DNA of 64,000 nt from Cyanophora paradoxa CCMP329 (GCA_004431415.1 QPMI01000039.1:558001-622000); one strand, 5' to 3'. Positions 5,013 to 62,354 are shown, counted from the stretch's first letter. Notes: generated by a model not told the origin, from the letters alone. A program made the numbers and translations.

Positions 5013-7379
5013 ATGGCCAGCCGCAGCACGGGCAAGCGCGCGCGGCAGGAAGCTGATGTCGAAAGCATTGGCACGGATGAGGAGATCACCGTGGCACCCG
5101 CACAGGCATATGCATCCGTCCCGGCGCAAGTGTTGGGCGACTGCAGGCCATCTCCGACGGGAATCACGAGGATAAAAGGTACCATCTCAATCGTTGCGCG
5201 CTTTTGCGAGGCTAAGGACGCGGCAGGTCCGGCGCTCGTCGGTGTGCCGCCTTCCGAGAACTGGCAGCAAGCGCTGCTGCACGCCGCGATGCGCGATCTG
5301 CGCGTCGAGGGCCTTTCAGCAGCAGACTTAGAGCTTTACTTCTACTGGCAGCTGCCGCATCGTCGGAACTTCGCGGTTGTGGGCGCCGGCGCGCGCATGC
5401 CAGCTATCGACGATGGTTTCTTCTACATCGCGAGGAGAGGCGGAGACTGGCCCGAGACGGAGCACCATCCCTTCCTGCATCGCCTGTATTCGCAGACGTC
5501 AGCGCTAGCGTCAAGCGCGCCAGCCGCGGCCGCAGCACCGGTACCGTCGCCGGCTCCGGCTCCGGCGGCCGCGGCGGGAACAGGCGCAGCGAGCGCTGGC
5601 GCGATGTCGGCGGCGGAGGTGGCAGCCATCTTCGCGGCCGCGGCGCAGGCCGTCGTGGCGGCCAGCAGCGCGCAGCCCAGGCAGAGCGCGGGGAGCGCGA
5701 CAGAGCGGGAGCAGGACGTCGACCCGGCCGCTGTCTCGCAGCAAGCTCCGCCCCCGTCGCTGCCGCGCGGCGGGAGCGTCGGCGACAGGCGACAGTCAAC
5801 AAGCAAAGACAATGTGAGCGGCAGAGCAACCAGCCAGAGTCAGGTGGGAGTCCTTTCCTTGAAGAGTCGAGCGGGCCCGGCTGATGCGCGGTCTGCCGCA
5901 GCGGGGCCCCGCGAGCTCGTCGCCGGGGAGCGTCTCTGGGGAGTCCGCCGCAGAGCGCATCGTGTCGGAGCCGTCCTCCGCGCCGCCCACCGCGCCGGGC
6001 CCCAGCGCCGGACCCAGCCAGGTTGCTCCGGCCGCAACGCATGGATCCGTGCGCGGGGCTGACCATGCTGCGCGCAGCCGGCTGCTGCCCCGGAGATTCA
6101 GGTTTTTGGTGGAGAGAGTATCACGGAAGCCGTGGCGCGCGCCGCCCCGGGGCAGACCGTCCGCCTCGCCCCCGGCCAGTGCGCCCCCTGCGCCCCGTCC
6201 GCGGCCCTCAGCCGCGCCTCGGACCAACGCTGCCCCGCAGGTACAAGGAGAAGCTGGTGCTGAACAAGGACGTGCACATCGTCGGGCCGCCAGACGCGGA
6301 GGCCGTCCTCGAGTGGGATAAGGGGCCCACGCTGCACTGCACGGGCCCCGCGGCGCCGAGCGTCAAGGGCATCACGATCCGATGCTCGGCGCCGGAATGG
6401 CCAGCGATTTGGATCACGGGCGGGAGCCGGGCGGCCGTGGAGAACTGCGATGTCTCCAGCACCTGTCTCAGCGGCATCGAAGTCCGCGACGAGGGGACGG
6501 CCCCGACGCTGCGCGGTGGGTGCCCCGCCCCCGCCCCCCGCCCTCGCTGCACAGGAATTCCGATTCCGCGCTGCACAGGAAACACGGTGCACGACTGCGG
6601 CCAAGCGGGCATCGTTTTCCGCACGTCGGCAAAGGGCGTCGCGGAGGGCAACGACGTCTTCGGCAACGCGAACGCAGGCATCGGGATCGCGACCGGCGCG
6701 GACCCCGTTGTGCGGGCCAACAAGGTCCACGATGACAAGCAGGGCGGCATCCTCGTGTACGAGAACGGGCGGGGCACCGTCGAGGGCAACGACGTCTACG
6801 GCAACGCGAGGGCGGGCATCGCGATCTCGACCGGCGCGGACCCCGTCGTGAAGGGCAACAAGGTCCACGACGGCATGGCGAGCGGCATCCTCGTGGCCGA
6901 GAACGGGCGGGGCACGGTCGAGGGCAACGACGTGTTCGGCAACGCGAACTCGGGCATCGCGATCTCGACCGGCGCGGACCCCGTCGTGCGGGGGAACAAG
7001 GTCCACGACGGCAAGCAGGGCGGCATCTTCGTGTACGAGAACGGGCGGGGCACCGTCGAGGGCAACGACGTCTACGGCAATGCGAGCTCGGGCATCCAGA
7101 TCAGGGAGGGCGCGGACCCCGTCGTGCGGGGCAACCGGTGCGCCCGCGAGCTCCTCTATAGCTGCGCCTCCTCCCACCCCATCTCCCCCGCCCCTGACAC
7201 CGGCCCCCCACAGGGTCCGCAACCAGCAGTTCGGGATCTACGTATACGAAGGCGGCAAGGGCACCGTTTCGGGCAACACGATCGAGCGCATCTCGGACCC
7301 GTCCTTCGCGCCCTGCGGCGGCGTGAAGGTCCTCGACGGCTGCACGCCGGTCGTGCAGGGGAACACGTTCCGCCCGTAG
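5013..7379 (+). CDS. Protein with an unknown N-terminal domain, a low-complexity linker and a C-terminal right-handed parallel beta-helix (PbH1/CASH, FBXO11-like repeats)
   Basis: In-frame splice path: 5013-5843, 5902-6021, 6078-6178, then 6241 onward with two further introns, stop TAG 7377-7379. Repeats such as GNDVYGNARAGIAISTGADPVVKGNKVHDG. Confidence 0.8.
6644..7137 (+). repeat. 138-bp (46-aa) coding tandem repeat, 3 full units plus a partial unit
   Basis: GAGGGCAACGACGT recurs at 6644, 6782, 6920 and 7058, exactly 138 bp apart. Confidence 0.95.
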
Positions 7380-7519
7380 CGCTGCGAGCTCGGGCGGAAG
7401 CTCCTTCGAAGATCCCCACCAGTAGCGCCAGCAGCGCTTGCATTGCAGGTGCATTTTTTAATTGCAGATGCGCATTCAATTTACAAGGTTTCTTCTATAT
7501 ATGTAATATGAAGTAGCCG

Positions 7520-10500
7520 GGCGGGGGGCGCGGGGGCGGGCGCGGGGGCTTCGGGCGGGCGGGCGGGTCGACGTCGGTGCACTCGGAGGCAGTGGCGCGC
7601 CGCGGCGCGGGGCTGAGGCCGGCGGCGGCGGCCCCCGGATCGGGGGTCGAGGGGTGGGCGGGGCCCCTCCCTTCGACTCCTGTGGAGCTAGCTATAGAGG
7701 GATCAGGGGTGGAGGGGTGGGCGGGGCAGCTCCCTTCGACTCGGCGACTGCGACGGCGAGCTCCGCTCCCTTGAGCGGAGCATGAGCTTGAGCGGAGGCG
7801 GCGGGGCGCGGGGGTACCGGGCGACCGTACGCGTCCCCGACAGGTGCCTGCGGCCCAGAGGCCCGGGGGTCGGTCGCGGGTCGGGGGTACGTGCCTTGCA
7901 CATGTACAGCTGCAGGTGCTGACGCCAGCCTGACGGCGCGGGTCGCTCGCCGCGCGTGCACGCCAAAGGCGGAATTCAAAGTTCACAGGGCGCGATCTGG
8001 AGCCGGCGAGGGCGGCGAGGGAGCGCGCGGAGGCGGCGGGGCGGGGCGGGCCGCGCGGGGGCGGCGGGCGGCGGCTCGGCCCTCAGACGAGTCGGCCCGC
8101 TGCCCGCCGCGCCGCACCAGAGGCGGTCCAGCGGCGGCCGGGGGAGGAGGCGGTCGGGGCGAGGACGGATCGGAGCCGGCGGGGCGGGGGCGACGGGGCG
8201 CGGGGGAAGCGAAGGGCGGGGGCGCCTCGGGGCAGGGGCCCTGCGGTCGAGCCCGGGGCGAGGGCGGGGGCGGGGGTGGGGGCGGGGGCGGGGAGGGGGG
8301 AAGGGGAGCGGGGAGGGGAGGGGGACGCGGAGCCGGAGTAGGGGGGGAGCAAAGAGAGGGGGAGGGGGAGCCGGAGCGGGGGAGGGCGGGGCGGAGGGGA
8401 AGAGCGTCGGCGAGGCCCGAAGAAGAAGAGATAAGGCGTTCAGGTGAAGAGAAGAGTGAAGGGAGAAGGAAGGAGCGGCTCGCTTGCGGACGGCCGGGCG
8501 GGAGCGGCCCGCGGGCCGGGCGGCTCGGTGGCGGCTAGGGAAGGGCTTCAGAAGGAGGGGAGGGGGAGAAAAGCGCCCTCTGCTGGGGCGGGGCGCGGGG
8601 CGGGGGACGGGGGCGGTGCCGGAGCGGCGCGGATGGGCGGGGCGGGGGCGAGCCGACGAGGGAAGCGGGGTGGGGGTGGAGGTGGGGTGGGGTGGGGGTA
8701 CTGGGCCAGGGACCAGGGGTCGCGTAGCGGGGGGAGGCGAGGCCCCCGCGGAACCCTCGGGAGAGGAGGTCGGGCGGGAGCTTCAGAGGGAGGGCGGGGG
8801 GCGCCGGGGCGCCGGGCAGGGCGGGGAGCGCACGCGTACGGGAGGCGCAGAGGCGGCGGAGGGCCCGCCACAGGAGGCGGGGGCGGGGACCGGAGACGTA
8901 AAGGGCGGCGGCACGCCAGCGGCAGCAACGCGGAGGAGGAGGCCGGCGGGGCGGCCCCGCGGCAGTCCACAGAGGCTCGAGGGGAGAGGCGCGTCGCGCC
9001 GGGCGCCGATGCGGAGCGGCTATGAGCTGAGCGGACGCGTCAGCGGGATCGGGATCGGATCGGGGAGGGCAGGGCGGAGGGATCGGACCTGCTCGGCGTG
9101 CGACTGCGCGAACTCAGGCGGCCTCGGACGGGGGGACGGGGGAGAGGCGGGGCGGGGCGAGGGGCGAGGGCGGGGCGGGGGCGCCCCGGCCCCGCTCACC
9201 GGCGAGCGCGCGGAGGCGCGGGGGCTGCTGAGGCGCCGGCGCAGGAGCGGACTCCGGGAGGTCCACGGCCGCCCCGGGCCCAGGCCCGGCGCGAGGCGGG
9301 GCGGGGGGGCTCCCCGCAGGCGGCCCGACGGGGGCGCCCGGCCCGCCCGCTCGCCCACGCGGCGCCCGCACCGCTCCTGCGCCGCGGGCGGAGGCGAGGG
9401 CCCGGGGCGGGGCGGGTGGGGCGGGGTGGGGCGGGGTGGGGCGGGGTGGGGCGGGACGGGGCGGCGGGGGGTACCCGCACCGAAGGATTACGGGGCGGGC
9501 GGCGGGAAGTGTTCTCCGCGGCCGGCGGCGCCGAAGCCGGCGGCGGTGGGTCCGGCGGAGAGGCGTGGCTTCGGGTTCTCCGCCCTGCGGTCACGGCGGG
9601 ATCAGCGAGAGCCACAGAATCACTGAGGCGGGCGTGCAGGCGGCTCGGCGAGCGCCCTCGGGTCAACGGAGGAGACGGGCGGCGGAGGGGGCCGGTAAGA
9701 GGGGGCTCAAGGAGGGGAAGACGAGCGAACGGTGCGGGTGGTAGGGGGGAAGCGCCAGAGATGTGGAGGGCACGGGGCGCAAGGGAAGGGGAAGTGGTGG
9801 GAAGGGTAGCGGGCGAAGAGGGGTACAGGGCACGGGAGGGGGTACGAGGGAGGGGCAGCAAGGGGCGTGTGCGGGCTGCAGAGAGGACGTGCGCGGCGGG
9901 GGTGGACAGGGGCAGGGGGAGGGGTAGGAAGGGGAGGAGAGCCCGGAGGGCCGGTCCCAGGCGTCTGCGCCCCCCGCCTTGTGCTTATATCAGAGCTGCT
10001 CGCGATCGGAGCTGGAGCCGGGGCGGGGATGGGGGCGGGGAGGCGCCAGGGGCGGGGGCGGGGGAGAGGAGGCAGAGAGGGAGGCGGAGGGCACCCTGCC
10101 GCGGCGCGGCGCGGCTCGGCGGGGGAGGGGCGGGGCGGGGGAAGAGGGTGGCGCTGAGGCGAGGCCTAGGAGCGCCTGCGCGGCCCGCCGACGCGTCCGC
10201 TGGCCGCGAGAGGGGCTGAGGACCCGGGGCGGCCGCGAGGGGCCTCCGGCGGGGCGGCCCGAAGCTGAGCGGGGGAAGGGGCGGCGGAGAACTTCGGAAG
10301 GCGTCCGAGGCGCATCGGGCGGGGCCGCGGGGCTCGGAGGGGGGCGGGGGGCGACGCCTCGAACTCGCCTCCGATGAGGGGCGGAGGCGGCGGAGGCGGC
10401 GGCGCAGGAGGCGCGCGTGCCGGCGCCCCGTGAGCCCGCGAGGGGCGGACGGGGGAGGGGAGGGGCGAGGCCATGGGGCGCCCGAGGCCGGGCGGGGGGC

Positions 10501-11590
10501 GGGGCGGCAAGGAGGGCGTCCCGGGGGAGCCCGAGGGCGGGCTCGGGCCGGCGACCCGGGGAGGAAGGCGCGGGGGAGGAGCGGGAAGAGGAGCGTGAAG
10601 CGGGCGCTTCCTCGCGAACGAAGCCGCCGGCGCGGCCTCCTCCTCGCCCGCTGCGCTCACCACTTCGAGTACCCGGGGGGCGCTTCGGGGGGTACCGCAG
10701 CCCTCTTCCTCCTCCGCCCCGCCCCCCATCGCGGCCTGCGCGGGCGCCTCAGGGGCAGGCCGCGGCGGCAAAGAACGGGAAAGAAGTTGGTACCCTGGCT
10801 GCCTCCTCCCCCGCTGTCCCTCCTCGTCGACTTCGCTCACTCGTCTCCGAGTTGGAGGCGGAGGAGGGCTCAGGGAGGGGGGGGAGGGGGGGGGAGGGGG
10901 AGGAGGAGGGGTTAGGGGGGGGGAGGGGCCGGGGGGGGGGGGGGGCGTAGGAGCGCAGCGCCGGATATGTGGAGGGCAAGGGGCGAGCAGGGGTAGCGAA
11001 AGAGAAGGGGAGGGGCGGGAGGGGGTAGGGGGCGAAGAGGCATGCAGGGCACGGAGGGGGTACGGGGGAGGAGCAGGAAGGAGCGTGTGCGGCTCGAAGG
11101 GCGGGCGCGGCGGGGGCGATGAGAGGCAGGGAGGGGCAGGAGGGGGAGGAGAGCCCGGAGGGCCGGTCCCTGGCGTCTGCGCCCCCCGCCCCGTGCTATA
11201 AGGAGACCGCGAGCGGGGTGGGGTACGGGAGGGCGCACACAGGGGCCTGCGGGAGGCACGGGGGGCCGGCGCTGCGGGCGGACAGGAAGCGCTCGCCCGC
11301 GCCGCCGCGCGGAGGCCCGCCGGAGGCCTCGCCGCCGGGGACCGGGGGCGGGCCCGGGCGGGGAGGGGAGGCCGGGAGGGCCACCGCCCGCCGCCTGCGT
11401 CGCCGCCTGCGCCTCCCGCTCCTCGCAAAGACTGAAAGACTCGCAAAAAAAGAGGGGCCCCGGGCCCTCTCCGAGCTCGGCGCGAGGGGCGCCGCCTCTT
11501 GCGCCCCGCAGGCGCGGCGCCGGCCCCGCGCACCTGCGCCGCAGCGCCCCGAAGCGCGCGAGCGGATGCGGTCCGACGCGGGGCCGAGCA
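7520..11590 (-). other. Possible spliced low-complexity or decayed gene on the minus strand
   Basis: The minus strand shows exon-like stretches (SEVDEEGQRGRRQP; AAMGGGAEEEEGCGTPRSAPRVLEVV) bounded by GT...GTACC donors and CTGA...CAG acceptors. No recognisable domain, and I could not build a complete ORF. Confidence 0.3.
9700..10005. repeat. Diverged partial copy (A) of a local duplication
   Basis: ATGTGGAGGGCA...GGAGGGCCGGTCCC(A/T)GGC(G/A)TCTGCGCCCC matches ~10865-11210 and ~14050-14345. Confidence 0.75.
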
Positions 11591-12110
11591 TTGGCACCGG
11601 CCGCGGCACGCCGCCTCGGCGCGGGGCCCGCGGCAGCCGGCAGCCGGCCCGCTGGCGAGAGTGAGTCTTGCTGGCCGGCCGCGGCAGCTGAGTGAGTCAG
11701 CCGAGTGAGCTAGCGCCGCCGGCTCTCGGAGTGAGCGACCGCGGCCGGCAGCACTGATCGCCTCAGACGCCTCAGATACCTCGAAAAACGCCTCAGATGG
11801 ACGCACCGATCGTCCTCGAGCTCTCGCAGCGTGCCCGGCGGCGGCGCGGCGAGGGTCCACACCGCTGAGAGCCAGGGACGAGCGCTGCGAAGGGAGGCCG
11901 CCGCTGCTGCGGGAACCGGACGCTGCGCGCGCTGCCCTCGCTTTGGATCCTCGCTCCGGTACAGGTCCGGTCCGCGCTGCTGAGAGGCGTCGCTGGAGCG
12001 CGCGAGGGACGAGCGCAGTGTGGGAAAGGCTGCGCCTACTGCGAGAATTGAAATCTCATCACCGCAGAGCTGCGCGAGTCTTCCAGCGGGACCCGCCCTC
12101 GGCTTGGACT
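10555..12110. repeat. Copy B of a ~1.4-1.5 kb direct duplication
   Basis: Colinear blocks shared with 13743-15050, e.g. CCCATCGCGGCCTGCGCGGGCGCCTCAGGGGCAGG, ACTGAAAGACTCGCAAAAAAAGAGGGGCCC and GCGCGAGCGGATGCGGTCCGACGCGGG. Confidence 0.9.
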
Positions 12111-12154
12111 ACCCGTCGGCGCGTCCGTAGACATACCCGTCCCTTAGATGGCCC

Positions 12155-13218: not shown

Positions 13219-13742
13219 GGGGTGCGGACGTGTTACGAGTGAGGTGTGCGAACTTGTCATGGCCCATCCATCAATTCATCTCCTTTGCCCCAGCTTCAGC
13301 GCCAGCCTGCCCTCTCCTGAACTTGCTCCCTCTCGAAATCCTATTCCGTCCCGCCAGATTCGATCGCGATGTAAGAGCCCGTCCCTCTCCCGGCAGTATA
13401 CGTGCGCATGCATGTACAGTAACGTCAATGTCGATCTTATCTTAAAGGCGCCTTCTTGCCTGGGCGATGCCGATCGACTTTGGAGGCCGGGGTTCCGAGT
13501 TCGACCCTGCGACCTCCCTCGCTGCCGTCCGCCTCTGTGCGAACTAGCTCCGCCCCCGCCACCCCCCCCCCCTCCCCCCCCCCTCCCCCCTCCCCTCCCC
13601 AGTCTACACGCGGTGTACCCTAGTCTACACGAGGGCGGCCGAGGAGGGAGGAGGGGACCCGCGCGAGAAGGAAAGGGCGGCGGGAGACCGGCGGGGAGGA
13701 ACAGAGGGCCCCCGGGCGGGGCGGGGCGGGGCGGAGGGCGGG

Positions 13743-25250: not shown

Positions 25251-28200
25251 ATGCAGCAGCCAGCCCGGGAGCCCCCGCCGGCCCCGGCCCGCGGCGTGCT
25301 TCCGTCGGGATTGCACTCTATGGGACGGTATCAAGCCGGCAACTTCGCCAAGAAGCAGGCGCGGTTGAGCGCGCCGGCAGCCTTCGCGCCTTAGCTAAGT
25401 CGCCCACAGGTATTTCAGATGAGGGATGGTGCCATGCTGAACCCTGGAGACTCGCTGGCAAAGCGTGCAGCCGCTGCCGCGAAGCAGGCGCAGAGCATGG
25501 AGCCTTACCTGGAGCAGCCGGCGTTCAACTCGGGCGCCCACGACGCCCGCCCGGTGCGTCATGGCTTCTTACATGCCTCTGGCGCTAGCTACGGGTTCCC
25601 CGTTCTCGTTTTGCGACCGACTCTCCTCAGGACTACCGGCACCCGAGCCAGCCGCGGATCGTGCCCGAGCAGGCCCCTGCCGCCGGACACAAGACCTGGT
25701 ACTACCAGAATCCGCAGCCTGCTGGCCCCCGCGTCGGCCACAGCACGGCGGTCGACCCGCTCGGCGTTCCCGCCGAGTTCAAGAACAAGGTCCGGGCGCC
25801 CGGGCGTGGCGCCCCAAAGGGCTCTAGCTAACGGAGCGCGTGCTCCTGCGGCCAGATCCTGCGCTTCGAGGCGTTCTTTTGGGAGAACGTGACGGACACG
25901 GCGTTCGAGCCCGTCCGCATCCGGAAGTGCCTCATGTACTACTTCCTGGAGGACGACACGATGCAGGCGAGCGGGAGGCGACCCGCGCACGCGTTCCGTG
26001 GCCGCTGACGGCGCGCGGCGGGCGGCAGATCATCGAGCCGCGCCAGGACAACTCGGGGATCCCGCAGGGCGTCTTCCTCAAGCGGCACCGCGTCATGAGC
26101 GACACGCGCCAGTTCGTCACGTGGGCGGACATTAACCTCCGATCCGACCTCGTGCTCTACGGCCGCCGCTTCCGCGTCGTCAACTGCGACGACTTCACTC
26201 GGGCGCGCCCTGCCGCTTTCTTTCCTTTTCCGCTCCTTTCTGAGGCACCCGCAGCACTTCTACAAGTGTATGAACCGAACTTTGGAGCCGCCGGAGCCGT
26301 ACCCCGAGGTCCGCTTCTTTTCCCGCCCTCTTCTTCTGCCGCCGCCCGCCTCCCTGCCCACGCGGGCCGGCCCCGGCAGGACCCGCACGAGAAGCACCAG
26401 CGGGAGGAGCGCGAGCGCAGGCTGCGTCCGCCGGGCAAGCCCTCTCCCGCCGTCGACCCCGTCAAGCGGTCCGCCCGCCCCGCCCCACCCCGCCCTTCTC
26501 CCCCCTCCCAACTCTTCTCCCCGCGCCCAGGTACATGGAGGCTCAGCTGGGCAAGCCCACGCACCTGCTGCAGAAGAGCAGCAACCCGCAGCAGTGGCTC
26601 GCCAACGACCGCAAGGTGCCGCCCTTCCTCCCTGAGCTGAACCGAACCGAACTGAACGGGCCCCTGACGCCCCGGGGAACGAAGGTGCTGCGGTTCTACT
26701 GCCAGTGGGACGACCGGGAGCGCATGTACGGCGACCGCCACCAGTTCGTGCGCGGCGCTCGCCTCCCCTCCCCCGCCCTCCCCCACCTTCCGGACCCCCG
26801 AGGCTGGGCGCGCCCCTCGGGGATGCTAGCTAGGCTCTCCTCTCCCTCCCTCCCCCGCTCTCCCCGAAGGCTCGCCTGGCCCTCCCTGAGGCCGCGGCCG
26901 CCCGCCTCCCCGCCTCCTCCCTCGCCTGCCCGCCCCGTCCCCCTCCCTCCGGCCTCTGACGGGTGCTCCCCCCCAGATCCTGCTCTTCTACCTCGCGAAC
27001 GACACGGTGGAGGTCCTCGAGGAGCAGCCGCGCACCAGGTCCGAGGCCCGGGCCGGCGCGGGGCGCGGCGGGGCGGCGCGGGGTGGGCTGGGGCGGGGCG
27101 GGCCGGGGCACGGCGGGGCGGGGTGGGGCGGGGGCCTCGAATCTCATATCTAATACCTTTAAGATCTCGAGAGACTGAGCGGGGCGGCGCGGGGCGGGGC
27201 CTGACGCGCGCTCGCTCGCTGGGCGCGGCAGCCTGGGCTTCGTGCACTACACGCCCGTGCTCCGCCGGCAGCGCCTCCCCAAGGACTACCGCAACGGCGT
27301 CGCTGGTGCGCTCGGGCCGCCCTCCCTTCCCCTCCTCGAAGAGAGGCCGAGCGGGCGGGGGCAGCGTTCGGGGCGGCGGCCTTCTACCAGCCGCAGGACC
27401 TGCGCGTCGGCGACGCCGTCAACGTCTTCGGCCGCAGCGTCCTCCTGTGCGCGCACGAGCGGACGAAGCAAGCGAGAGGCCTCGCTCTGACTTGTATCGC
27501 AGCTACGACTGCGACGACTTCACGCGGCAGTACTACGCCGACGCGTACGGCATCGTGCAGGGCGCGATGCCGACGCCGCGCACGGAGAAGCGCGAGGCGC
27601 CGCCGATGCGCGTCCCCGCGCACGAGGGCTTCATGATCGGGGCGGAGGAGGACACGCTGCAGAACACGCGGGCGCTGCAGCCGAAGCCGCTGCAGCGCCT
27701 GGACTACTGGAAGTTCATGCACTACGACCAGACGGTGCTCCAGTTCAACGCGCGCCTCGACACGCAGCGGCCCGAGGACATCGACCGCGGTCCGCCCGCC
27801 CCCCCCCTCCCATCCCTCCCCTCCCCCTTCCGATCTGACCTGATCTGATCTGATCTGATCTCTCCCCCCCTTCAGACTTCGTGGTGAAGTTCCACCTGGC
27901 GGACGACACGATGGCGATCACGGAGAGCGCCCCGCCGTGCGCCCCCGCCGGCACTGGGAATCACGGAGGGAGGGGCCGGCGCTCGCTCAGATAAACCAGC
28001 TTACGGGATTTAGATTTGTGTATAAACTGGCTTAGATAGACTAGCTTAGGGGATTTAGATTTTTTTAAACAAGCAACTTAGGGGATTTTTAGATTCTTAG
28101 ATTGGGAAGCGGGGCCGGGACCCGGGGCTGACCGGGCGGCCCGGGGTCCCCGCAGGAACTCTGGCCTCCTCGGAGGCAAGTTCCTCCAGCGCGCCAAGGT

Positions 28201-41826: not shown

Positions 41827-41865
<39 letters not shown>

Positions 41866-44820: not shown

Positions 44821-45431
44821 AAAACCGCGTGGGGGGAGAAAGTGGCCGGGGGAGACCGTAAAAAGACTTTTGCAGGGTAAGTTAACTGACTCTCCAATGT
44901 GATTGGCTAGCGCGCGCGGCGTCCTCCCACGCGACCGCGTTCGCGCCCGGCCTCGCTCTTGCAGTACGGAATGTCGAACATGATGCGCGCAACGACCTCG
45001 AACTGGTCTGGCTCATATATCTGCTCCCTGTGCGTCGCTGGACCCATTTTTGTCCCGGGTGTTGGTGCCTGTTCCTGGATCACCCTTTGGTCGGACGGGA
45101 CCGGGAGACATGGTTTCGGGGTCCCCTGGGAATGCGCTTTCAGGGTGTACCGCGCGGCCCCGGTTTTGCGGAGGTCGGGGAAATGGGATTTGGGGTAGGG
45201 TTGGGCCCAAGGGACAGGGACAGGGGAAGTGTTTTACCCTTCCCCAACAAGCCTTGAAGTTCCGTGGTCTCAGAGCCTCGGAGTTTCCAGCCTCAGGGCC
45301 TGGCAGCTGCAAGGCTCGAGACGTGGATCCGGATCACCGGTACCCCGGCTCGGCATCGGACGCCGGCGTGGTCGCCTGCGCCCGCGGGCTCCTCCCGCCC
45401 CGCACCCCCGCGGGCCGTGCCACGGTGCTAC

Positions 45432-46872
45432 CTAACGGGCAGGAGACTGGGCGAGCTCGAAGTGCCGGGGCTCGCGGGCCGGCGCGCCCCCGGGTCCGGG
45501 GTCCGGGGCCAGCCGCCGGGCCGCCTCCCCTGCGGGGCCGAACGCGAGGAAGCGGCGGGCCCAGAGGCAGAAGGCGCGCGCGAGGGCGCGGCAGCGCGCC
45601 GCCTCCGCGATTTCGGGGTCCGAGCCAAGCGCCGCCGCCCCCTCCACCAGCCCCTCCAGCAGCCCCGCCCCGCCCCCGCAGCCGCAGCCGCAGGCGCCGG
45701 TCTCGGCGCAGCGGCGGGCGAGGAAGCGGCGGTGGAGCCAGAGGGACTCCTTGGCGGGGTACCACTCCGTGACCTGCTCGAGAAAGCCGACCTCGGCGGC
45801 GAGGCGGCAGGCGGGGCAGCCCGGGGCCAGCAGCAGCGCCCGCTGCCGGTAGTGCCACCCGCTGTAGTCCCCCGGGCTCCGCCCCGCCCACGCCTCCGTC
45901 CCCGCCAGCTCCCCCGCCGCCGCCGCCGGCTCCGCCACCGCCGCCCGCTCCAGCGCCCAGCCGCGGTGCGTCCAGGCGTGGTAGTTCTTGGGGTACAGGC
46001 TCCCCACCCGCCTGCCGGCGCCGCCCCGTCTCAGAGGGCCCGGCCGGGCCGTCCCCTCCGAGGGGCGCGGCGCACCCGCAGACTTCGGCCTCGTGGCGGA
46101 ATGTCTCTACGGAGAGTGCCACGCCCCCGCCGGCTCCGGGCGGCCCCGCGCCTCCCCCGCAGAAGAAGCGCTGCAGGAGCCAGCGCCTGATGGAGAATGT
46201 GAAGGCGGGCGGGCGGGCGGGCGGGGCAGCGCCACACCGGTGCGCCCACGCCTCGGCGCTCTTCGTGTGCTTCGTGAAAAGCAGGTCGAGGAAGGCGAGC
46301 TCGGCCGCCGGCGCCTGCGCGCCCGCCTCCAGCGCCCGCTTCCGCGCGTTCCAGGCCGTCCCGTGGTCCGCGTTCACCAGCAGCACGCCCCGCGTGCAGC
46401 TGAGCAGCCGCCGCGCGAGCTCCTGGTCGGGGCGCTCCCCGGCCCGCACGCGCTCTGCGCGGCGGGAGTGAGCCCAGCGCGGCGCCGGGCGCTCGGCGCC
46501 GGCGCTCGGGGGCCGCGCACCGCGCAGAGAAGGGAGGGCCTCGGCGAACGCTTTCCGGGCCTGCACGTACAGCACGGGTATGAACCACGGCGCGACGCCG
46601 AGCTTGTGGTTCTCGACGACGAGCGGCGGATCGCCCTGCGGGCCCAGCCGGGCGGCCAGCGCGAGCACGCCGAGGAGGCTCTTCCCCAGGTCGCGGTTCG
46701 ACTCGAGACCCGAGGAGAGCATCACGCCCATCTCGTCGCTGCCCTCGGGGCCCCCGGCGGGTCAGATCGGCCGCGCGCGGCTACGGACCCGTGCAAAGCA
46801 GCGCAGATCGACGCACATGTCGGGGTCCCGCTCGAACGCCTCGTCCAGGCATCGCAGAGCGTCGACCGCCAT
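45432..46872 (-). CDS. PTAR1: Protein prenyltransferase alpha-subunit repeat protein (PTAR1 / GGTase-III alpha-like)
   Basis: PPTA repeats LLVNADHGTAWNARKR, ELAFLDLLFTKHTKSAEAWAHRRWL, YPKNYHAWTHRGW, DYSGWHYRQ, YPAKESLWLHRRF. Confidence 0.85.
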
Positions 46873-54900: not shown

Positions 54901-57900
54901 CCGCCTCCGCCTCCGCCACCGAGGTGGCCCCGCCCCGCCCGCTGCCTTCGCCCCGCGTTCCGCGCCTCACGCGCCGGCGGCGCCGCCTCAGGTGAAGCCG
55001 ATCGAGCCGGGGGCCCCCGAGAACATCCGCAGCGTCGACAGCGACGAGCTCGAGGCGCGCCCTTCAGAGTCTCCTCTCTCTTTGTCTCTCGCGGCGTCTT
55101 ACGCTCTGATCTTCTTTGCAGGCGCGGCGGGCGGCGTCGATGCGGCGCCGCTCGATGACGGGCGCCAGCGGGCGGCGCGGGAGCCTCACCGGCGCCGGCG
55201 GGAGCGCCGGCCCCGGGCCGAGCGCCATACCCCCCTGGGTCGCGGGCCCCGGCGCCGGCCTCAGCAGCGTCGACTCGAAGGACTCGCTCGCCACCGTCAC
55301 GTCGGCGCACGTGCGTACCCCCCTCCCCGCCCCCGCCCGGGGCCGCGCTGACGCGCCCGCTCAGTCCGTGGCGACGGTGGGGCAGCTGAGCCGCCGCGGG
55401 AGCGGGACCGTCAGCCATGTGCGCCCGTCCCGCCCCTTGGACTCTTTCTCGCCTTATCCGATCGGGGCGCAGGTCTGGGCAGACGCGCTGCGGCACGCCC
55501 ACGAGGGCGAGCGCGACTCGCCCGCCTCGGAGCGCTCCGCCGGGCCTGCCACGAGCCACCGCCGCCTCTCGCTCGCCGCGGCGGCCCCGCAGCACCGCTC
55601 CTCCGCCCGCTTCGCCGCGGGGGCGCCCCGCCCGGAGGGCACGGATGCGAGACGGCGGGCGGCGCGGGGCTTGCCCGCTCCCTCAGCGTCCGGCGTGACT
55701 CGGCGCGCGAGGGCCCGCGCACTCCCCGCAGCGCCGTCCCTCCCTCGCCCCCGCCGACCCCGCCGCCCTCCCGCCGCGTGGGGCGAGCAGGGCGCGCCCC
55801 CCGTCGCCTGGGGCGCCCCGCCCCGGGCCCCGCCTCGCCTCGGTGAGAGCGGTACCCCGTACCCCTCCCACGGCCGAGCGAGGCTGAGGCGCCCGTACCC
55901 CCGCAGAACTGGGGCCGCCGCCCCAGCGCCGACATGGCGCACGGCAGCCTTACCGCCGCCGACTTCCACGTGCATTCTCCTGTACCCCCCGCCCCGCCCG
56001 CAGTCTATTTATAGCGCGCGGCAGGCGGCGCAGGCGGCGGCGATCGCGGCGACGATGGCGGCCCTGGGCCTACCCCCCGGCGCCCCCCTCCCCCTCCTGC
56101 CCTTCCCCGTACCCCTCCCCGTTCCCGGCGCCCCTCTTTCCGTCCCCGGCGCGACCCTCCCCCTCCCCGGAGCCCTCCTACCAGCCCCCGTTTCCCCTCA
56201 GCATCCCCCTCCCGTACCCCCGTCCGCCTTCTCCCCCCACGCCGCCGTCTTCGACGCGGGAGCACAGGTACCCCCGCGCCCACTCTCCGATGCTGGGGCA
56301 GCCGCTGATCCGCCCGTACCCCCCCAGGGACGGGTACACCAGCACCGGCACTCGCTGCCGGACCCGTCCATGCCGGCGCCGGCGGAGGACGCGCCCCAGG
56401 ACCCCCAGGCCTTCGCCGCCCCTACCCCCGCGCCCGGCCGCGGGCTGCCCCCCGCCGACTTCTTCCAGCCCGGGACCACCTCCTCCGTGCGCGTACCCCC
56501 CTCCGCCCCGGCGCCGGCCTCACGGCCCCCCTGCGCCGGCGCAGAAGCGGGTGCGGAAGCCGAGCCTGTCGGAGGACGGGAGCCCTGCGACGGCGTCGGC
56601 GGCGGCGGCGGCGCTGGCGGCGGTGGGGCACCCGCACCCCGTGCCCCGCATCCACACCCCGGGCTTCCGCTCGGGCTCCATCAGCATCCGCCCCCCGGTG
56701 CCCTGCTGTGCTGCTCGCGATGCCCGCCGGGGCGCCGGCGTCTGATTCGCCGCAGGAGGACCGCCGTGCGAGCAGCTCGTCGCAGGGGGGCGCGGGGGCG
56801 GAGGAGGAGGAGCAGAGGGGGCAGCGCGGAGGGGCCAAGGAGGGTGCCTCGCCCCCGCTGCACGCGGCGCCGGCGCCGGCGCCGCCCGGGGCCGTGCCGC
56901 CGTCCTCCACGCTGTCGCCGCCGGCCTCGGGCTTCCCCACCGGCGCCGGCCTCTCGCACCGCTCCGAGGGCGACGCCTCGCGCCCCGCCACCGTGCGCCC
57001 CGAAGCTTCGACGGCCGCTCGGACGAGCAACTGAGGCGCCGCAGGGCCGGAGGCCGAGCATAAGCGCCGCAGGCAACGAGGAGCACTCCTCCAGGCCCCC
57101 GACCGTGCGCGCCCTCGCACACGTACCCCCGCCCCGCCCCGAGCAGCGCCTGAGGCCGCCTTTGCGGGCCCCGCAGAGCCGGCGGCCGAGCGTGAGCGTC
57201 GCCGAGCCCGCCAAGGAGGAGCCGGTGAGCATCCTGAAGACATCCAAGGTACCGTACCCCCGCTGAGCTTCGGCACGGTACCCCCCTGACGCCCGGGGGG
57301 TAGAGCTTCAAGGCGAAGTCGTTCCGCTCGCGCTCCGTCTCTATCGACCCCGCCGCCCTCCCCGTGCGCCCCGTACCCCCCTCGCTCCCCCTCCCCTCGT
57401 ATTTAGAGCCCGGCCCGTCCAGAAGCTGGACGACGACGCGGCGGCGGCGGCGGCGGGCCCCGAGACGGGCCGCCTCAGCTCGCGCCGGGCCAGCATGCCG
57501 GCGGCCGGCGGGGCCGCGGACGGCGCGGGGGTACGGCCGCCGCGGCCAGCAGCCTCTGGATCCGGCGGGGAAAGGACCCCGAGCCCGCGCCGGTGCGCCC
57601 CGCACCCCCGCCCCTGTACCCCCCTACCGGGCCTGAGGTTCGATCCGCAGGAGGCGGCGCCGGAGGGCCCGGACCCGGCGGTCTTCGCGGCGAGCCTCTC
57701 GCAGCGGCTGCGGGCGGCGGCGGGGGCGGCGGGGCGCTGGCGGAGGCGGGCGGGGCGGCGGGGGCCCCGGGGCCCTCCCGCTGCTCGCCCGCGTCGACGC
57801 CCACGCCGACGCCCGCGCCGCCGCCATGCCGCAGCCGCCGCCCCCGCCCCAGGCCGCCCCCCCCTGCTCCCCTCCTCCCGCCGCCAGTCCTTCTCCCTCC

Positions 57901-58051
57901 CGCCCCCCTGCCCATGGTGTACCCCCTCCCGACCGCCGCGCCCGTGGCGGTGCCGTACCCCGCGGCGTTCGCGGCGGGCTTCGTGCCGCCCCTGCCTCCG
58001 ATGCCGCCGCCCCCCCAATTCCTCCCGCACGCGTACGCCCCTCACGCGTAG
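51935..58051 (+). CDS. Uncharacterised multi-exon protein: N-myristoyl/palmitoyl motif, alpha-helical (ARM/HEAT-like) region, long disordered C-terminus
   Basis: Starts MGSVCCGG. More than 20 short in-frame exons with canonical splice signals encode amphipathic helices (e.g. VEVMEKAYNLIACLAQ). The 3' exon structure is uncertain. Confidence 0.65.
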
Positions 58052-59295
58052 ACGGCCACACGAACGCTTGGCCGTGAGCAGCATGCTGAGCTTTCCCTCT
58101 TTTCGAATCACTTTCTTTTCTCTACTAAAATTATCCATAGTAGTCATATTTTACACGCCATGGCGCTATGAATTAGTATACGTACTTAGCTTCGAAGTTA
58201 ACAAGTAATGCGTAATGTATGCAATAAAGTAACAGCTCTAGATCTAGATCTGGATTTCAATTCGAACAGACGGCCACGGGCGGCTTGAAAGAACTGCATG
58301 CGCATGCGGATCAGATTCCGCAGACCGTCGGACGGGTATACGTACGGGTCCGGGCCCCGGGCCCCTCTCCGGACTCGAGAGAGAGACGAGAGAGACGCAA
58401 GATCGAGATCTAGAGACGCCGCCGCGCGCCGCCGGGGCCCGGCCCCGGGCGCCGGGCTGGGGCGGTGGCGGCGCCGGGCGGGAAGGCGGGCACCAAGCTC
58501 GGCGCACGATCGAGAGACGCCCGCGCGCGCCGCCGGCGCCCCGGGCCCGGGCACGGCCCCGCACGCCTGCCGTGAGCCGATGCGGCCGGCGCCCCGCGGG
58601 AAGCCCATTCCGCAGCCGCCCGCCCCGTTCCGCAGCGCCCTCGCCCCGCCCCCTCCTCCTCCTCCTCCGCCAGGCAGCCGCCCCGGAGCCCTGCCCCCTC
58701 CCAAGTCCTCCTCAAAGGAGGACTGGAGGAGCCCGGGGCCGGCCCCGGCCGAGGGCGCGGGAGGAGGAGGGGGCGGGGGCTCGCGGGCGCCGGCGCGGCC
58801 TTCGCGCTCCCCTCTGCCGGCCCGCGTTGGTCCCGGGGCGGGCCTCCTGGGGCAGAGGAGGACGGGGATGCGGGGGGCCGGCGCCGGCGAGCGCGGCGCC
58901 GGCCCCACTGACGCGGCGCCGCCCGTGCGCGAAGGCGGTGGAGGCGCCGCTGAGGTCTCCGGCTTGTCCTGCCGCCCCGCCGGGAGGCCTAGGGACAGCA
59001 GCTGTTTTCCGCGCACGCGGCGCCGGCGCCGATCGTCGGCTCCACCTGCCGCCCCGTCGCGACGGAACGCAGCGGCGGCGCAACGGCACGCGGCGCGCGG
59101 CGAGGGCGTACGCGTAACGGCCTGCGCGGAGCCGGAGACCCGCTCGTCGCCCGCGGCCAGCGCGACGGCGCTGCGCGGCGGCGGTGGGCCAGCGGCTCCG
59201 GAACGATCCGAACGGGCGCACCGATCGTCCTCCGGCTCCCGCCTCGCGCCCGGCAGCAGCGAGCTCGAGCACTCGGCTGGACACGGAAAGGCGGA

Positions 59296-59462
59296 AAGGC
59301 CGCGGCTGCAGCGGGGGTCTCTCTCTCATGAGAGGCGCGGCTGGAGCGTGCGGGGGACGAGCACTCGGCTGGAAGGACCGCGGCTGCAGCGGGGAGCGAA
59401 GTTACAGCGCGCGGCGCTGCGCGAGGCCTCCAGCGGGGCCTGCCCTCGCCTTGGATTCTCAC
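59296..59462 (+). repeat. Dispersed ~130-170 bp element, third copy
   Basis: TGAGAGGCG..GCTGGA..GGGGACGAGC..GCGGCTGC..GGCGCTGCGCGAGGCCTCCAGCGGGGCCTG(C/A)CCTCG matches 14920-15045 and, more weakly, 11860-12110. Confidence 0.75.
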
Positions 59463-59941
59463 CTTGGACGTCGACAGCCTTGGACGTCGACTCTCACATG
59501 GTGCCGGGGCGGCGAGCGGCAAGCCGCAAGCCAGGCCAAGCCTTGCAGGGGGGGTGGGGGGGGTAGAGGGCGGTTGGGTCGCGACTGCGTCGGCACTTCG
59601 AGCAGCACACGCGGCGGAGGCGCACTCGGCGGGTCATTTGAGCACGTGCGCAGCTGTACCGGTGCGCACAGCGCGAATCACCTGGGCCGAAGCTTCATTA
59701 GCCTTTTCATGTTTCGTGTTGCTCTTTCCCTCTGAACGAACGAGCTTAGCTCTACTCTAAGCGGTTAGTCGCCTTTGGCAGGCCGGGGCCGCCACGACCG
59801 AGGTCCGGTCTTCGGCCGCTCGGCCGCCTTCAACAGCGGCCCCGTCCGCTGTTACAACCAGCCGCTAGCTCGCATAAAGAATGTCCGCGAAGCCGTCTTT
59901 TTGATGCCAAAGTTGGCGCAGCCAAAGCGCCCGCGTCCGCG

Positions 59942-62354
59942 ATGGACTTCTTCAAAGCGATCAGCGACTTCTTCTCCGGCGACAGTGCCGCCGCCCCGCG
60001 AGCGCAGGTGCGCCGAAGTCGCTAAGTTGTCACACCGCCATCCTCATTGCGATTCCACTGTCCCAGGGCCCGGCGGACGCGGCGGAGTACGACTTCGACC
60101 TGTTCCTCTCGCACAAGCAGACGACCGGCGGTGACCTCGCCGGCCGCATCAAAGTCGAAGTGCGTCACCGCACGCGGCCATGGCCAGCGCGCGCTCGCCC
60201 CGTCCTTACGAGCTCCGCGGGCGCAGCTGGAGGCGCTTCGCCCCGGGATCCGCGTCTTCCTCGACGCCGACGCGCTCGGCGATATCCACGACCTCGCAGC
60301 GATCATCCGAAAGACGCGCTGCTTCGTCCTCCTCCTCACCCCGGGTGCGCCCCCCTTCCATCCCGGCCCTCCAGTCGGGGCCCACCGCCGCCCACGCGCG
60401 CTTGCGCCGCAGAGTGGCTGGAGAGCATGTTCGTGCTGCGGGAGCTCGCGGCGGCCGTCCGCTCGCAGCGCCGCATCCTCGTCGTGTGGGACCGCGAGCG
60501 CCTCCCCAACTTCCCCCAAAGTGCCCCCGCCCCCCCCTCAGCTGCCCGCTCCCCGGCCGCTGAGGCGCCGCCAGTCGACTCGCGGACGGCGCTGCCGCGC
60601 ATCGACGAGATGCATGACGCGGAGCTGCGCTGGACGCTGCAGCGCGTCCTCATGATCAAGGCCCGCCCGCCTGTTCCGCCTCGCCCCGCTGGCCCCGCCC
60701 CGCCTCGAGCCCAGCGCAGGCGGTGCAGTACATGCGGGAGCGGGCGCTGCGAGAGGCGGCGCTGCGGGAGATCCTCGAGCGCTGCGACGCCGCGCAGCCC
60801 TTCCGCATGGACGGCGAGCCGCCGGCCGCCGCCGCCGCCGCCCCGGGGCCCATCAACCACGGGGCCGGCCGGCCCGCGAACACGGCGCAGGTCGGCCCGC
60901 CACGCCCCCGCGTGTCTAGGACCCTCCGCTCACCAGAGCAGCAGGGGGCGGGGGCGGGCGGGGCTGGGGCGGCACGCCCGCCCCCGCCCCCGCAGCTGCC
61001 GCCGGGCTGGAGCGTTGCCCAGACCCCCGACGGGCGCACGGTCCGCCCTTCCCCCGCTCCCCCGCTCGCTTCTCCCCCTCGCTGAGGCCGCCGCGGGCAG
61101 TACTACTGGCACGAGGCGACGAACGAGACGCAGGCGAGCCGCCGGCGCTCTACAGCTCGACGCCGCTGCCCTGGGCTGTGCGGCTGACTGCGGCCCCGCA
61201 GTGGGAGCGCCCCACACCGCCAGCCCCGCCGCCCCCGCCGGGCCCTGCCGGCCCCCAGCGCCAGGCCGCCCCCGCCGCGGTGTGCTGGGGTTGCAATAGC
61301 CTTCCCAGCGGGAAGCAGCTGCGTTCTGACCGGCGCCACGCGTAGGCGGCCGGTGCAGGGGAGATTCTGGTGCGGCCGGGGGAGAGCATCGTGGCCGCTG
61401 TGGTGCGGGCCGCCCCAGGGCAGACCGTCCGCGTCCAGCCCGGCCGGTGCACATGTGCCCCGTCCCTGGTCCCGAGCCGCGCCTCGGACCGACGCGGCCC
61501 TGCAGGTACAAGGAGCAGCTGGTGCTGGACAAGGATGTGCACATTCACGGGTCGCGGGAGGCCGTCCTCGAGTGGGACCAGGACGTCACGCTGCACTGCA
61601 AAGGGCCTGCGGCGCCGAGCGTCAAGGGCATCACGATCTGCAACACGGCGCCGGAGGAGCCCGCGGTGTGGATCACGGGCGGGAGCCGGGCGATCGTCGA
61701 GGGCTGCGATGTGTCCAGCTCTGGCAGCAGCGGATTCCAAGTAAAAGACAAGGGGACGGCCCCGACGCTGCGCGGTGGGCGCCCCAGCCCACCCCCGCCC
61801 CCTGCCCTCCGTTTGACCGATTCCGCGCTGCGCAGGGAACGCGGTGCACGATTGCGGCGGGGCGGGCATCATCTTCCACACGTCGGCGAAGGGGGTCGCC
61901 GAGGGCAACGACGTCTACGGCAACGTGAACGCGGGCATCGAGATCAAGACTGGTGCGGACCCCGTCGTCAAAGGCAACAAGGTCCACGATGGCAAGGCGG
62001 GCGGCATCTTCGTGAATGAGAACGGGCGGGGCACGGTCGAGGGCAACGACGTCTACGGCAACGCGCTGGCGGGCATCGAGATCCGGGAGGGCTCGGACCC
62101 CGTCTTCAAGGGCAACCGGTGCGCCCTGGAGCTCCTCTGTGCCTAGTCCCTCCACATCTCCTCCGCCCCTGACACCCGCCCCCCGCAGGGTGCACGACCA
62201 GAAGTACGGGATCTGCGTGCGAGACGGCGGCAAGGGCACCATTTCTGGGAACACGCTCGAGCGCATCTCGGACCCGTCCTACGCGCCCTGCAGCGGCGTG
62301 AAGGTCCTCGACGGCTGCACCCCGGCCGTGCAGGGGAACACGTTCCGCCAGTAG
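59942..62354 (+). CDS. TIR domain + WW domain + right-handed beta-helix (PbH1/CASH) protein
   Basis: Spliced in frame. TIR: YDFDLFLSHKQTTGGDLAGRIKVE|LEALRPGIRVFLDADAL..CFVLLLTP|EWLESMFVLRELAAAV..ILVVW. WW: LPPGWSVAQTPDGRT|YYWHEATNETQ|WERP. The beta-helix runs to VQGNTFRQ* (TAG 62352-62354). Confidence 0.88.

Follow-up and report, generated by a model that had tools for sequence, protein, structure and literature searches.

In two genes of Cyanophora paradoxa, both on the plus strand of the 64,000-nucleotide stretch analysed here (the window), a right-handed beta-helix forms a 3'-terminal cassette with a phase-0 intron as its upstream limit and the stop codon as its downstream limit. The cassette has been copied at the DNA level from gene to gene together with its introns, and its central coil stack lengthens and shortens in two-coil steps of 138 bp. 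With a probability of roughly 0.55, we regard the two genes as belonging to a bacterial-type family that has expanded specifically in Cyanophora and in which an N-terminal effector or signalling domain is combined with a C-terminal PbH1 helix according to a sensor-effector model.

Structure of the two genes and their common 3' cassette

Gene 1 (tig00000157_g9696; protein P0023, 667 aa) spans positions 5013..7379 of the plus strand, with coding exons at 5013-5178, 5227-5843, 5902-6021, 6078-6178, 6241-6515, 6579-7137 and 7214-7379. Its splicing is borne out by RNA contigs from two studies, which connect the module with the exons at the N-terminal end: single spliced contigs of runs X1 and X3 cover 5006/5011-5176, 5225-5840, 5899-6018, 6075-6178 and 6241-6374 with zero mismatches, and the joint 7136/7213 is present in X1. 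In run X15, the introns are covered unspliced. The original prediction had taken the part upstream of the module as one exon; the contigs reveal a 48-nt intron (5179-5226) and a 40-codon exon (5902-6021) therein, the earlier model being short by two introns and one exon. This upstream part encodes an orphan domain, with a conserved core at P0023 residues 77-140 (5289..5480, plus strand, delimited by identity to paralogues), followed by an Ala/Pro-rich linker leading to the module. The domain is common only to two further beta-helix paralogues, P0187 and P0199, whose N-termini match its core with 62.5% identity across 64 residues. No Pfam family, no relatives in word searches and no Atlas lead at or above 0.9 were obtained for it, and its AlphaFold model is poor (pLDDT 48.7). 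The boundary intron (6022..6077, plus strand, phase 0, GT..AG, 56 nt; RNA joint in X1 and X3) marks the 5' edge of the beta-helix module (6078..7379, plus strand), which was assigned with Pfam, AlphaFold and Foldseek and is composed of an N-cap (6078-6515, with one intron), eight 23-residue coils in the exon 6579-7137, and a C-cap (7214-7379). The internal introns of the module are located at 6179-6240, 6516-6578 and 7138-7213, and its exons match the annotated protein P0023 at 100%.

Gene 2 (tig00000157_g9712; protein P0158, 573 aa) spans 59942..62354 of the plus strand. Our model, built on reading frames and splice sites, has twelve exons on that strand at 59942-60007, 60067-60159, 60227-60344, 60413-60660, 60720-60890, 60996-61040, 61101-61133, 61202-61279, 61346-61446, 61506-61774, 61836-62118 and 62189-62354. 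The annotation departs from it in two in-frame differences, with 57 nt removed inside 60413-60660 and with 60891-60995 kept; the module exons match P0158 at 100%. In RNA runs X1-X7, 37-49% of the words sampled from 59900-62400 are present.

The TIR domain of gene 2 is spread over three exons (60067..60660, plus strand; P0158 residues ~33-121) and was assigned with Pfam and solved relatives. With 28.6 bits at a cut-off of 28, the Pfam TIR_2 match of P0158 is marginal (0.6 bit over), and the TIR exons scanned singly gave no Pfam match. Among solved structures, the domain is closest to C. elegans TIR-1 and human SARM1 (PDB phmmer, E 5.8e-6); P0158 Glu103 is aligned with the Glu of a His-Lys-Glu stretch in TIR-1, this Glu being the catalytic one of SARM1 and TIR-1. 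Four paralogues have TIR regions that are 40-82% identical to it. The WW domain (60996..61279, plus strand) is encoded by three small exons of 45, 33 and 78 nt, the middle one with a GC donor, and matches the Pfam profile in full length (P0158 residues 250-279, profile positions 1-31 of 31; 47.8 bits, cut-off 26.9). It is followed by the boundary intron (61280..61345, plus strand, phase 0, GT..AG, 66 nt), whose flanking exons are joined at precisely these borders in the annotated protein, and by the module (61346..62354, plus strand) with its N-cap, four coils (exon 61836-62118) and C-cap, interrupted by introns at 61447-61505, 61775-61835 and 62119-62188.

As originally predicted, both genes encode the same module, with amino-acid identities of 69-78% when compared exon by exon with tblastn; a tblastn search within the 64-kb window yielded these two copies only, and the genes lying between them look unrelated. 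The three module introns occupy the same positions, with phases 2, 1 and 2 in both genes, and the module exons measure 101/101, 275/269, 559/283 and 166/166 nt (gene 1/gene 2). Also in agreement with the prediction, a phase-0 intron precedes the module in both, upstream of which gene 2 encodes TIR and WW and gene 1 its unrelated domain. DNA homology is limited to the module, extending from the acceptor of the boundary intron to 7 nt past the stop codon: the internal introns are 72-86% identical, the boundary intron 44.6% and the 3' flank 29%, and exon identity climbs along the module, with 71% for its first exon and 88% for its last. Gene 1 is longer than gene 2 by 276 bp, that is, by two 138-bp units or four 23-residue coils, seen as one clean alignment gap.

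The predicted unit numbers were confirmed: the tandem array of gene 1 (6644..7135, plus strand) holds 3.6 copies according to TRF (86% matches), and gene 2 about 1.6, under the TRF threshold. The description of a single repeating unit requires correction in that the 138-bp unit consists of two alternating types of 23-residue coil, the four variable strings quoted earlier being precisely the second coil of each unit. By the coil identity matrix, units 1 and 3 of gene 1 are 92% identical; no unit of gene 2 can be clearly paired with a single unit of gene 1.

The beta-helix fold and its variable face

Against Pfam Beta_helix (PF13229, in one clan with NosD; cut-off 25.9), the repeat exons score 153.3 bits in gene 1 and 64 bits in gene 2. 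An AlphaFold model of the gene 1 module (pLDDT 96.8) has three strands in each 23-residue coil, at coil positions 2-4, 11-13 and 20-22. Of the three strand faces, two hardly vary, and positions 7-9, 12, 14 and 15, around the middle strand, differ between coils and between genes. Both coil types have their entropy maxima at positions 8, 12, 14 and 15, and five of the six most variable positions (of 23) are shared between types A and B, so that the variation is clustered beyond chance, as had been proposed (hypergeometric p ~0.001, computed by hand from per-position entropies). Mapped onto the beta-helix model, the variable residues are confined to one face, that of the middle strand.

The suggestion of diversifying selection received no significant support: omega is 1.16 at the variable sites and 0.15 elsewhere (Fisher p 0.0035), yet it is not significantly greater than 1 (p 0.55), and as this site class was picked by amino-acid variability, dN is inflated. 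Since bacterial homologues vary at the same coil positions, an exposed face under relaxed constraint would account for the pattern just as well, and the variable pattern may merely mark where a PbH1 coil tolerates change.

Cyanophora paralogues and bacterial relatives

A search for the module family, with a catalogue of N-domains and repeats, returned at least 19 Cyanophora paralogues, not just the two copies. Their central coil number ranges from 2 to ~22, with an exact internal duplication of 92 residues in P0014, and their N-termini comprise TIR, TIR-WW, SAM-TIR-ARM (P0014), Sina-RING/zinc-finger/coiled-coil, and hydrolase plus lipase; six are of the RING/Sina type. In a tree of 243 sequences, the 20 Cyanophora module sequences (19 genes and one isoform) fall into a single clade with an SH-like support of 100, within which the five copies from tig00000157 (g9628, g9681, g9696, g9712, g9717) cluster regardless of N-terminus. 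A tree that unites the three genes bearing the gene-1-type N-domain in one clade was not rejected by an AU test (p 0.118). Of the exon-shuffled, repeat-variable family envisaged originally, the large size, the varying repeat number and the interchangeable N-domains thus stand, but shuffling is not separated from gene conversion at this AU p-value.

Bacterial and metagenomic homologues are 33-47% identical over 85-96% of the module. Examples such as the Rhodobacter sp. MAG protein MCA3448693.1 and a trypsin-beta-helix protein of Mameliella sediminis contain the same module from N-cap to C-cap, as do metagenomic TIR_2-beta-helix proteins that carry the label 'F-box protein 11' or 'parallel beta-helix repeat protein'. 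Like the Cyanophora proteins, they carry the effector N-terminally and the helix C-terminally and conserve and vary the same coil positions; the bacterial genes are intronless and single, whereas those of Cyanophora contain introns and constitute their own clade. The most frequent bacterial partner is TIR_2. Precomputed Pfam lists, counted by hand and including a few of Cyanophora's own proteins, contain ~30 TIR, 20 kinase, 11 AAA, 7 trypsin, 3 caspase, 2 CHAT and 1 SIR2 partner domains. Relative to this repertoire, WW, SAM-ARM and Sina-RING are eukaryotic partners added in Cyanophora. N-domains of the bacterial homologues match PADLOC models for ThsA-type SIR2, PD-T4-6 kinase, CHAT, caspase and TIR, and the SAVED_TIR model matches P0158 residues 33-111; in PADLOC-DB 2.0, no model spans the beta-helix, P0023 has no match, that of P0158 is local to the TIR domain, and those of the bacterial homologues are limited to the N-domains. 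At three bacterial loci inspected, we found housekeeping neighbours and no recognisable defence islands. A literature search returned no paper describing a bacterial family of effector plus PbH1 proteins.

The sensor-effector model and its alternatives

By analogy, the family looks like a sensor-plus-effector receptor family. The variable stripe would be a ligand- or substrate-binding surface, with its length and chemistry tuned by gain, loss and exchange of units, and binding to the helix would control the N-terminal domain. In gene 2, clustering induced by the target could switch on a SARM1-like, NAD-cleaving TIR domain, and the WW domain could bring in a proline-rich partner; the RING paralogues may use the helix as substrate receptor of an E3 ligase, comparable to the CASH beta-helix of FBXO11; for gene 1, the orphan domain would provide the output. 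To judge from the effector repertoire, the setting is most likely conflict, immunity or regulated cell death, and an immune-receptor reading is plausible. We consider it unlikely that Cyanophora and many bacteria have in common an undescribed class of innate-immune or cell-death receptors that consist of a single chain and lack an NTPase, and in which PbH1 would replace LRR, TPR or WD40 repeats for recognition, the middle-strand face would be a programmable stripe diversified by gain, loss and exchange of two-coil units, and the 3' exon cassette would be fitted to TIR, RING, lipase and other heads.

The same modules could make up an ordinary paralogous scaffold family, with a helix of general carbohydrate- or protein-binding (CASH-like) or oligomerising function reused in pathways as unrelated as ubiquitin ligation, lipid metabolism and NAD signalling, its variable positions being the least constrained surface, with no receptor diversification or immune role. 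An omega of about 1, not above, at the variable sites and variability of the same positions across all bacterial homologues are consistent with such a family, as are the abundance of PbH1 proteins (10,044 representatives at E <=0.001), the aptness of the six RING/Sina paralogues for a plain E3 substrate-adaptor role and the unrelated neighbouring genes in the window. We nevertheless regard it as possible but somewhat doubtful: the N-domains in Cyanophora and bacteria are strongly skewed to death and defence types (TIR, caspase, CHAT, SIR2, trypsin, PD-T4-6-type kinase), and the lineage expansion is partly clustered, with rapid change of repeat number. It is far less probable, to the point of being hardly credible, that the beta-helix is a carbohydrate-active lyase, epimerase or hydrolase domain and that the gene products are bifunctional enzymes. 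Among solved proteins, the mannuronan C5-epimerases AlgG, AlgE4 and AlgE6 and PL6 lyases are indeed nearest in sequence and fold (Foldseek probability 1.00 for AlgE4, AlgG and PL6), but the similarity is generic, with <=21% identity, a weak local sequence match (E 5.5e-9 over 111 residues) and a TM of ~0.6, and only the general fold is common. The coils are uniform, 23 residues each, without the long loops that form catalytic grooves, and range in number from 2 to ~22; Asp-Pro-His, the active-site motif of mannuronan C5-epimerases, was not seen in the module on direct reading, an informal comparison. The partner domains are of cytosolic signalling type, with no signal peptide at either N-terminus by inspection.

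A different question is how the cassette came to differ so sharply from its surroundings. It is possible, though less likely than not, that no exons were shuffled and that the N-termini were acquired long ago, gene conversion among neighbouring copies on tig00000157 having homogenised the beta-helix alone and left the sharp boundary at the intron. The grouping of the five tig00000157 copies whatever their N-terminus, the rise in exon identity from first to last, the gene 2 units without clear partners and the non-rejection of a gene-1-type clade by the AU test all suit concerted evolution; the same tree is, however, predicted by tandem duplication with replacement of the 5' part. Conversion and duplication with replacement, considered here from the DNA of two copies, are not mutually exclusive, and a cassette-like module would result from either.

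Among described systems, the analogy originally drawn to NLR, TPR and ROCO families applies in logic only, because an NTPase domain is absent: Pfam scans of both genes and the 19 paralogues revealed no NB-ARC, NACHT or other P-loop NTPase. Shared with NLR/STAND proteins and with other repeat-sensor immune proteins (LRR, TPR, WD40) are a hypervariable repeat surface, variable repeat number, interchangeable death or signalling domains and lineage-specific, clustered expansions; the repeat here is a beta-helix and not an alpha or alpha/beta solenoid, and with the central P-loop NTPase missing, membership in NLR/STAND was rejected. By sequence, the TIR domain of gene 2 is closest to the SARM1/TIR-1 subfamily, with the catalytic Glu aligned, and the paralogue P0014 combines SAM, TIR and ARM; the domain order differs from SARM1, however, SAM and ARM are absent from gene 2, and the C-terminal beta-helix has no SARM1 counterpart. 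In FBXO11, the repeats of the CASH beta-helix are reported to bind substrates. With the F-box proteins FBXO11 and FBXO10, the Cyanophora proteins would share a plan in which a PbH1/CASH beta-helix recognises the target and another domain delivers the output, the RING-Sina paralogues offering the nearest parallel. In domain content they differ from both in having neither F-box nor UBR box; Pfam scans of the Cyanophora genes detected Beta_helix and no F-box.

Gene structures and transcription

The layout of both genes was read from three-frame translation and splice sites, in a window of about 70% G+C with short introns and some GC donors. Gene 1 (tig00000157_g9696, database protein P0023, 667 residues, 5013-7379, plus strand) and gene 2 (tig00000157_g9712, P0158, 573 residues, 59942-62354, plus strand) each end in a PbH1-type beta-helix module of four exons, with lengths of 101, 275, 559 and 166 nt in gene 1 and 101, 269, 283 and 166 nt in gene 2. 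The internal introns have phases 2, 1 and 2 at homologous positions, and exon-by-exon tblastn found just these two module copies in the window, at 69-78% protein identity, all in agreement with the original prediction of one module with the same three intron positions. Directly 5' of the module lies a phase-0 intron, at 6022-6077 (+) in gene 1 and 61280-61345 (+) in gene 2.

A search of 1.84 billion representative proteins with the gene 1 repeat exon retrieved P0023, which is 100% identical to the four module exons and is listed in EukProt as Cyanophora paradoxa tig00000157_g9696.t1, placing the window in this glaucophyte; P0158 (tig00000157_g9712.t1) was returned by a word search using the P0023 module. 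Spliced models were searched exon by exon, and whole-protein scans were run on the database's own P0023 and P0158. In each of the sequencing runs X1 and X3, which come from different studies, one contig (1145 or 1125 nt long) joins five gene 1 blocks with zero mismatches (5006/5011-5176, 5225-5840, 5899-6018, 6075-6178 and 6241-6374), and in X1 the last intron (7138-7213) is spliced and the 3' UTR extends to at least 7505. Gene 1 is thus expressed as RNA, with splicing that follows the annotation. Run X15 was taken to be DNA, since the gene 1 introns are present unspliced there. The RNA contigs confirm the predicted phase-0 intron at the module edge of gene 1, and they reveal a 48-nt intron (5179-5226) and a 40-codon low-complexity exon (5902-6021) that had been overlooked upstream of it. 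Intron 6516-6578 is backed by the annotated protein and by a short-sided RNA joint, which probably derives from a paralogue.

Gene 2 is supported by its annotated protein and by RNA runs X1-X7, which contain 37-49% of the words sampled from 59900-62400. Our model and the annotation differ by two in-frame stretches, one of 105 nt with GT..AG ends (60891-60995, +) that is coding in the annotation and one of 57 nt inside 60413-60660 (+) that is spliced out there; either could be an optional intron. Introns 60661-60719 and 61134-61201, the latter within the WW domain, appear to have GC instead of GT donors, and the resulting junctions, after 60660 and 61133, match the annotated protein.

G-rich tracts of about 20 nt were seen 33 nt 5' of the gene 1 ATG (4961-4980) and about 380 nt 5' of the gene 2 ATG (59548-59565). 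The gene 1 RNA contigs start at 5006/5011, just 2-7 nt 5' of the ATG; further upstream, at 4500-4851, RNA contigs of 3.9-4.0 kb and depth 77-134 end at 4692/4851 and represent a strongly expressed neighbour. Over the repeat exon (6640-7135), contig depth climbs to several hundred, whether the run is RNA or DNA, and position 6778 shows an apparent C>G, both because 31-mers are common to many paralogues; their presence in RNA suggests that several paralogues are transcribed. Logan contigs over the gene 1 repeat are collapsed, short, of high depth and common to paralogues.

The beta-helix cassette and its heads

In a locus-against-locus comparison, the boundary-intron acceptor marks the start of DNA homology, which stops 7 nt past the stop codon: identity is 44.6% for the boundary introns and 29% for the 3' flanks, against 72-86% for the three internal introns and 71-88% for the exons. 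The sole large indel is a clean 276-nt gap, corresponding to two 138-bp units of two 23-residue coils each. TRF found 3.6 copies of the unit in gene 1 and reported nothing above threshold for gene 2, where about 1.6 copies are present; the repeat had been described correctly, the variable strings quoted with it being the second coil of every unit. Identity between the modules (6078-7379 and 61346-62354) climbs from 5' to 3' by exon (71%, 82%, 85.5%, 88%) and dS drops from 0.51 to 0.16, a gradient that would fit gene conversion.

The Pfam Beta_helix model matches the repeat exons with 153 bits (gene 1) and 64 bits (gene 2), and AlphaFold, using a 36-row alignment (A1), predicts a regular solenoid in which each 23-residue coil has three strands (pLDDT 96.8). 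The best solved matches, the alginate epimerases AlgE4, AlgE6 and AlgG and the PL6 lyases, share only the generic fold with it, at no more than 21% identity and a TM-score of about 0.6.

Upstream of the module, TIR and WW domains had been proposed for one gene and an unrelated domain for the other, as the searches bore out. The N-terminal half of P0158 matches TIR_2 (28.6 bits, cut-off 28) and WW (47.8 bits) in Pfam; taken singly, the TIR exons are too short to yield a Pfam match. This TIR domain is closest to human SARM1 and C. elegans TIR-1, whose catalytic glutamate aligns with its Glu103. For the N-terminal half of gene 1, no Pfam family was found at E up to 1, two word searches returned only P0023 itself, and an Atlas feature search gave no lead of at least 0.9, its weak leads (0.77-0.78) being ubiquitin-like domains. 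Within it, a core some 65 residues long (5289-5480) is conserved, being 62.5% identical to the N-termini of P0187 and P0199, two beta-helix paralogues with the same orphan head; for the gene 1 domain AlphaFold gave an unreliable fold from a 3-row alignment (pLDDT 48.7).

What had been proposed as a family from two copies is indeed multi-copy, with at least 19 module-bearing Cyanophora genes in protein searches, five of them on tig00000157 (g9628, g9681, g9696, g9712, g9717). By Pfam scans, the N-terminal heads are TIR (P0152, P0177, P0179), TIR-WW (P0158, P0160), SAM-TIR-ARM (P0014), a Sina-type RING with zinc finger and coiled coil (P0180, P0185, P0188, P0202, P0220, P0235), an alpha/beta-hydrolase with a class-3 lipase C-terminal to the helix (P0001), and the orphan domain of gene 1 (P0023, P0187, P0199); none was recognised in P0008, P0167 and P0169. 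The number of regular central coils is 2 in the RING genes, 4 in gene 2 and P0167, 8 in gene 1, 12 in P0152 and P0008, and about 22 in P0001. P0014 (tig00000455_g1009) carries an exact tandem duplication of 92 residues, or four coils (1002-1093/1094-1185), that stems from an assembly artefact or else from a very recent unequal crossover. The number of repeats is clearly labile and moves in two-coil steps, and module length would change by unequal exchange of two-coil units. The six RING paralogues use a coiled coil to link their Sina/SIAH-like RING and zinc finger with a short beta-helix of two coils, and would be E3 ligases in which the helix probably serves as substrate receptor. Among ten long ORFs between gene 1 and gene 2, searches found only traces of a DM10 domain and of prenyltransferase alpha-repeats (26535-27845; 45337-46731), and thus no local immune-type cluster inside the window.

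A FastTree analysis of the non-repetitive N-cap, covering 243 proteins, puts the 20 Cyanophora sequences (19 genes and one isoform) all into one clade (support 100), which means that the lineage gained the module a single time, by entry or by origin within it, before it passed to different heads. A careful tree clusters the tig00000157 copies irrespective of head, placing gene 1 with P0167 (95/82) and adjoining the TIR genes g9712 and g9717 (94/85). Different heads on one module may reflect tandem duplication with head replacement, or gene conversion of the module between genes that differed already. An AU test of the module tree against a clade of the three orphan-head genes did not reject that clade (p 0.118), so that both histories are compatible with the sequences. 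The anatomy itself, a 3'-terminal beta-helix module behind a phase-0 intron joined to varied heads, supports a cassette model.

Variable positions and selection

In the AlphaFold model, strands occupy coil positions 2-4, 11-13 and 20-22. Among 59 distinct Cyanophora coils, entropy peaks at positions 14, 12, 8, 9 and 15, joined by position 7 in one of the coil types and by position 2 in the second, and is near zero at positions 1, 5, 10, 11 and 19; five of the top six variable positions are common to both coil types (hypergeometric p ~0.001, computed by hand). They comprise the turn preceding the middle strand, its outward residue and the two residues following. Since equivalent positions stack along the solenoid, they would make one stripe on one side, and the predicted clustering on one face thus holds in the periodic model. 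Bacterial homologues vary at the same coil positions, so the pattern belongs to the whole family and not to Cyanophora.

Diversifying selection, also expected from the original prediction, found no significant support. When six disjoint coil pairs from both genes were counted by the Nei-Gojobori method, omega was 1.16 at the stripe (positions 7-9, 12, 14 and 15; 23.3 nonsynonymous and 6.7 synonymous changes), where dN is biased upwards by choosing the sites from amino-acid variability, and 0.15 elsewhere. The contrast between the two classes is significant (Fisher p 0.0035); the excess of the stripe omega over 1 is not (p 0.55). Whole-module omega between gene 1 and gene 2 is 0.35-0.8, at a dS of 0.16-0.5. 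With an omega not significantly above 1 and a biased choice of sites, diversifying selection is unproven, and relaxed constraint on the stripe accounts for the pattern equally well.

Bacterial relatives and proposed function

A search of representative proteins returned 10,044 matches at E ≤0.001 and 795 at ≤1e-30. The closest outside Cyanophora are bacterial or metagenomic, 33-47% identical across most of the module, which in them is usually followed by no more than 20 residues. Partner domains among the matches listed in the word search with the P0023 module, counted by hand and including a few Cyanophora proteins, were about 30 TIR, 20 protein kinase, 11 AAA, 7 trypsin-like protease, 3 caspase, 2 CHAT and 1 SIR2. 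The N-terminal domains of bacterial relatives match PADLOC defence models (ThsA-type SIR2, PD-T4-6 kinases, CHAT, caspase, TIR), and no PADLOC model covers the beta-helix. One other eukaryotic match was a BTB-beta-helix transcript of Ploeotia vitrea. Literature searches returned no description of TIR-beta-helix proteins from algae or bacteria, nor a published description of the beta-helix family.

The heads are of kinds known from immune and cell-death proteins (SARM1-like TIR, caspase, CHAT, SIR2, RING, lipase), and because of this resemblance the most likely function, inferred at every step, is that the helix would act as a ligand-binding sensor governing an effector head. A precedent for protein recognition by a beta-helix fold is the CASH helix of FBXO11. 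NLRs have an NTPase, whereas the Cyanophora family has none and is therefore not an NLR family. If the helix is a sensor, modular immune-type proteins would have a new recognition scaffold, common to bacteria and an early-branching photosynthetic eukaryote, and the family would be a clear eukaryotic case of assembly in which a single 3' cassette, set behind a phase-0 intron, is joined to various effector heads; it would also bear on the bacterial roots of TIR/SARM1-type signalling in eukaryotes and on the diversification of receptor repertoires that lack an NTPase switch. If the helix does not sense, the family still shows a glaucophyte in which repeat number evolves fast and domains recombine in cassette fashion.

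At the three bacterial loci examined, the genes stand singly among housekeeping neighbours. Two bacterial TIR-beta-helix genes have small genes directly 3' of them; these lack homology to one another, and no conserved partner gene was therefore found. In Mameliella sediminis (locus L003, 2248-9282), two further trypsin-like genes on the same strand precede the trypsin-beta-helix gene, a possible three-gene protease cluster.
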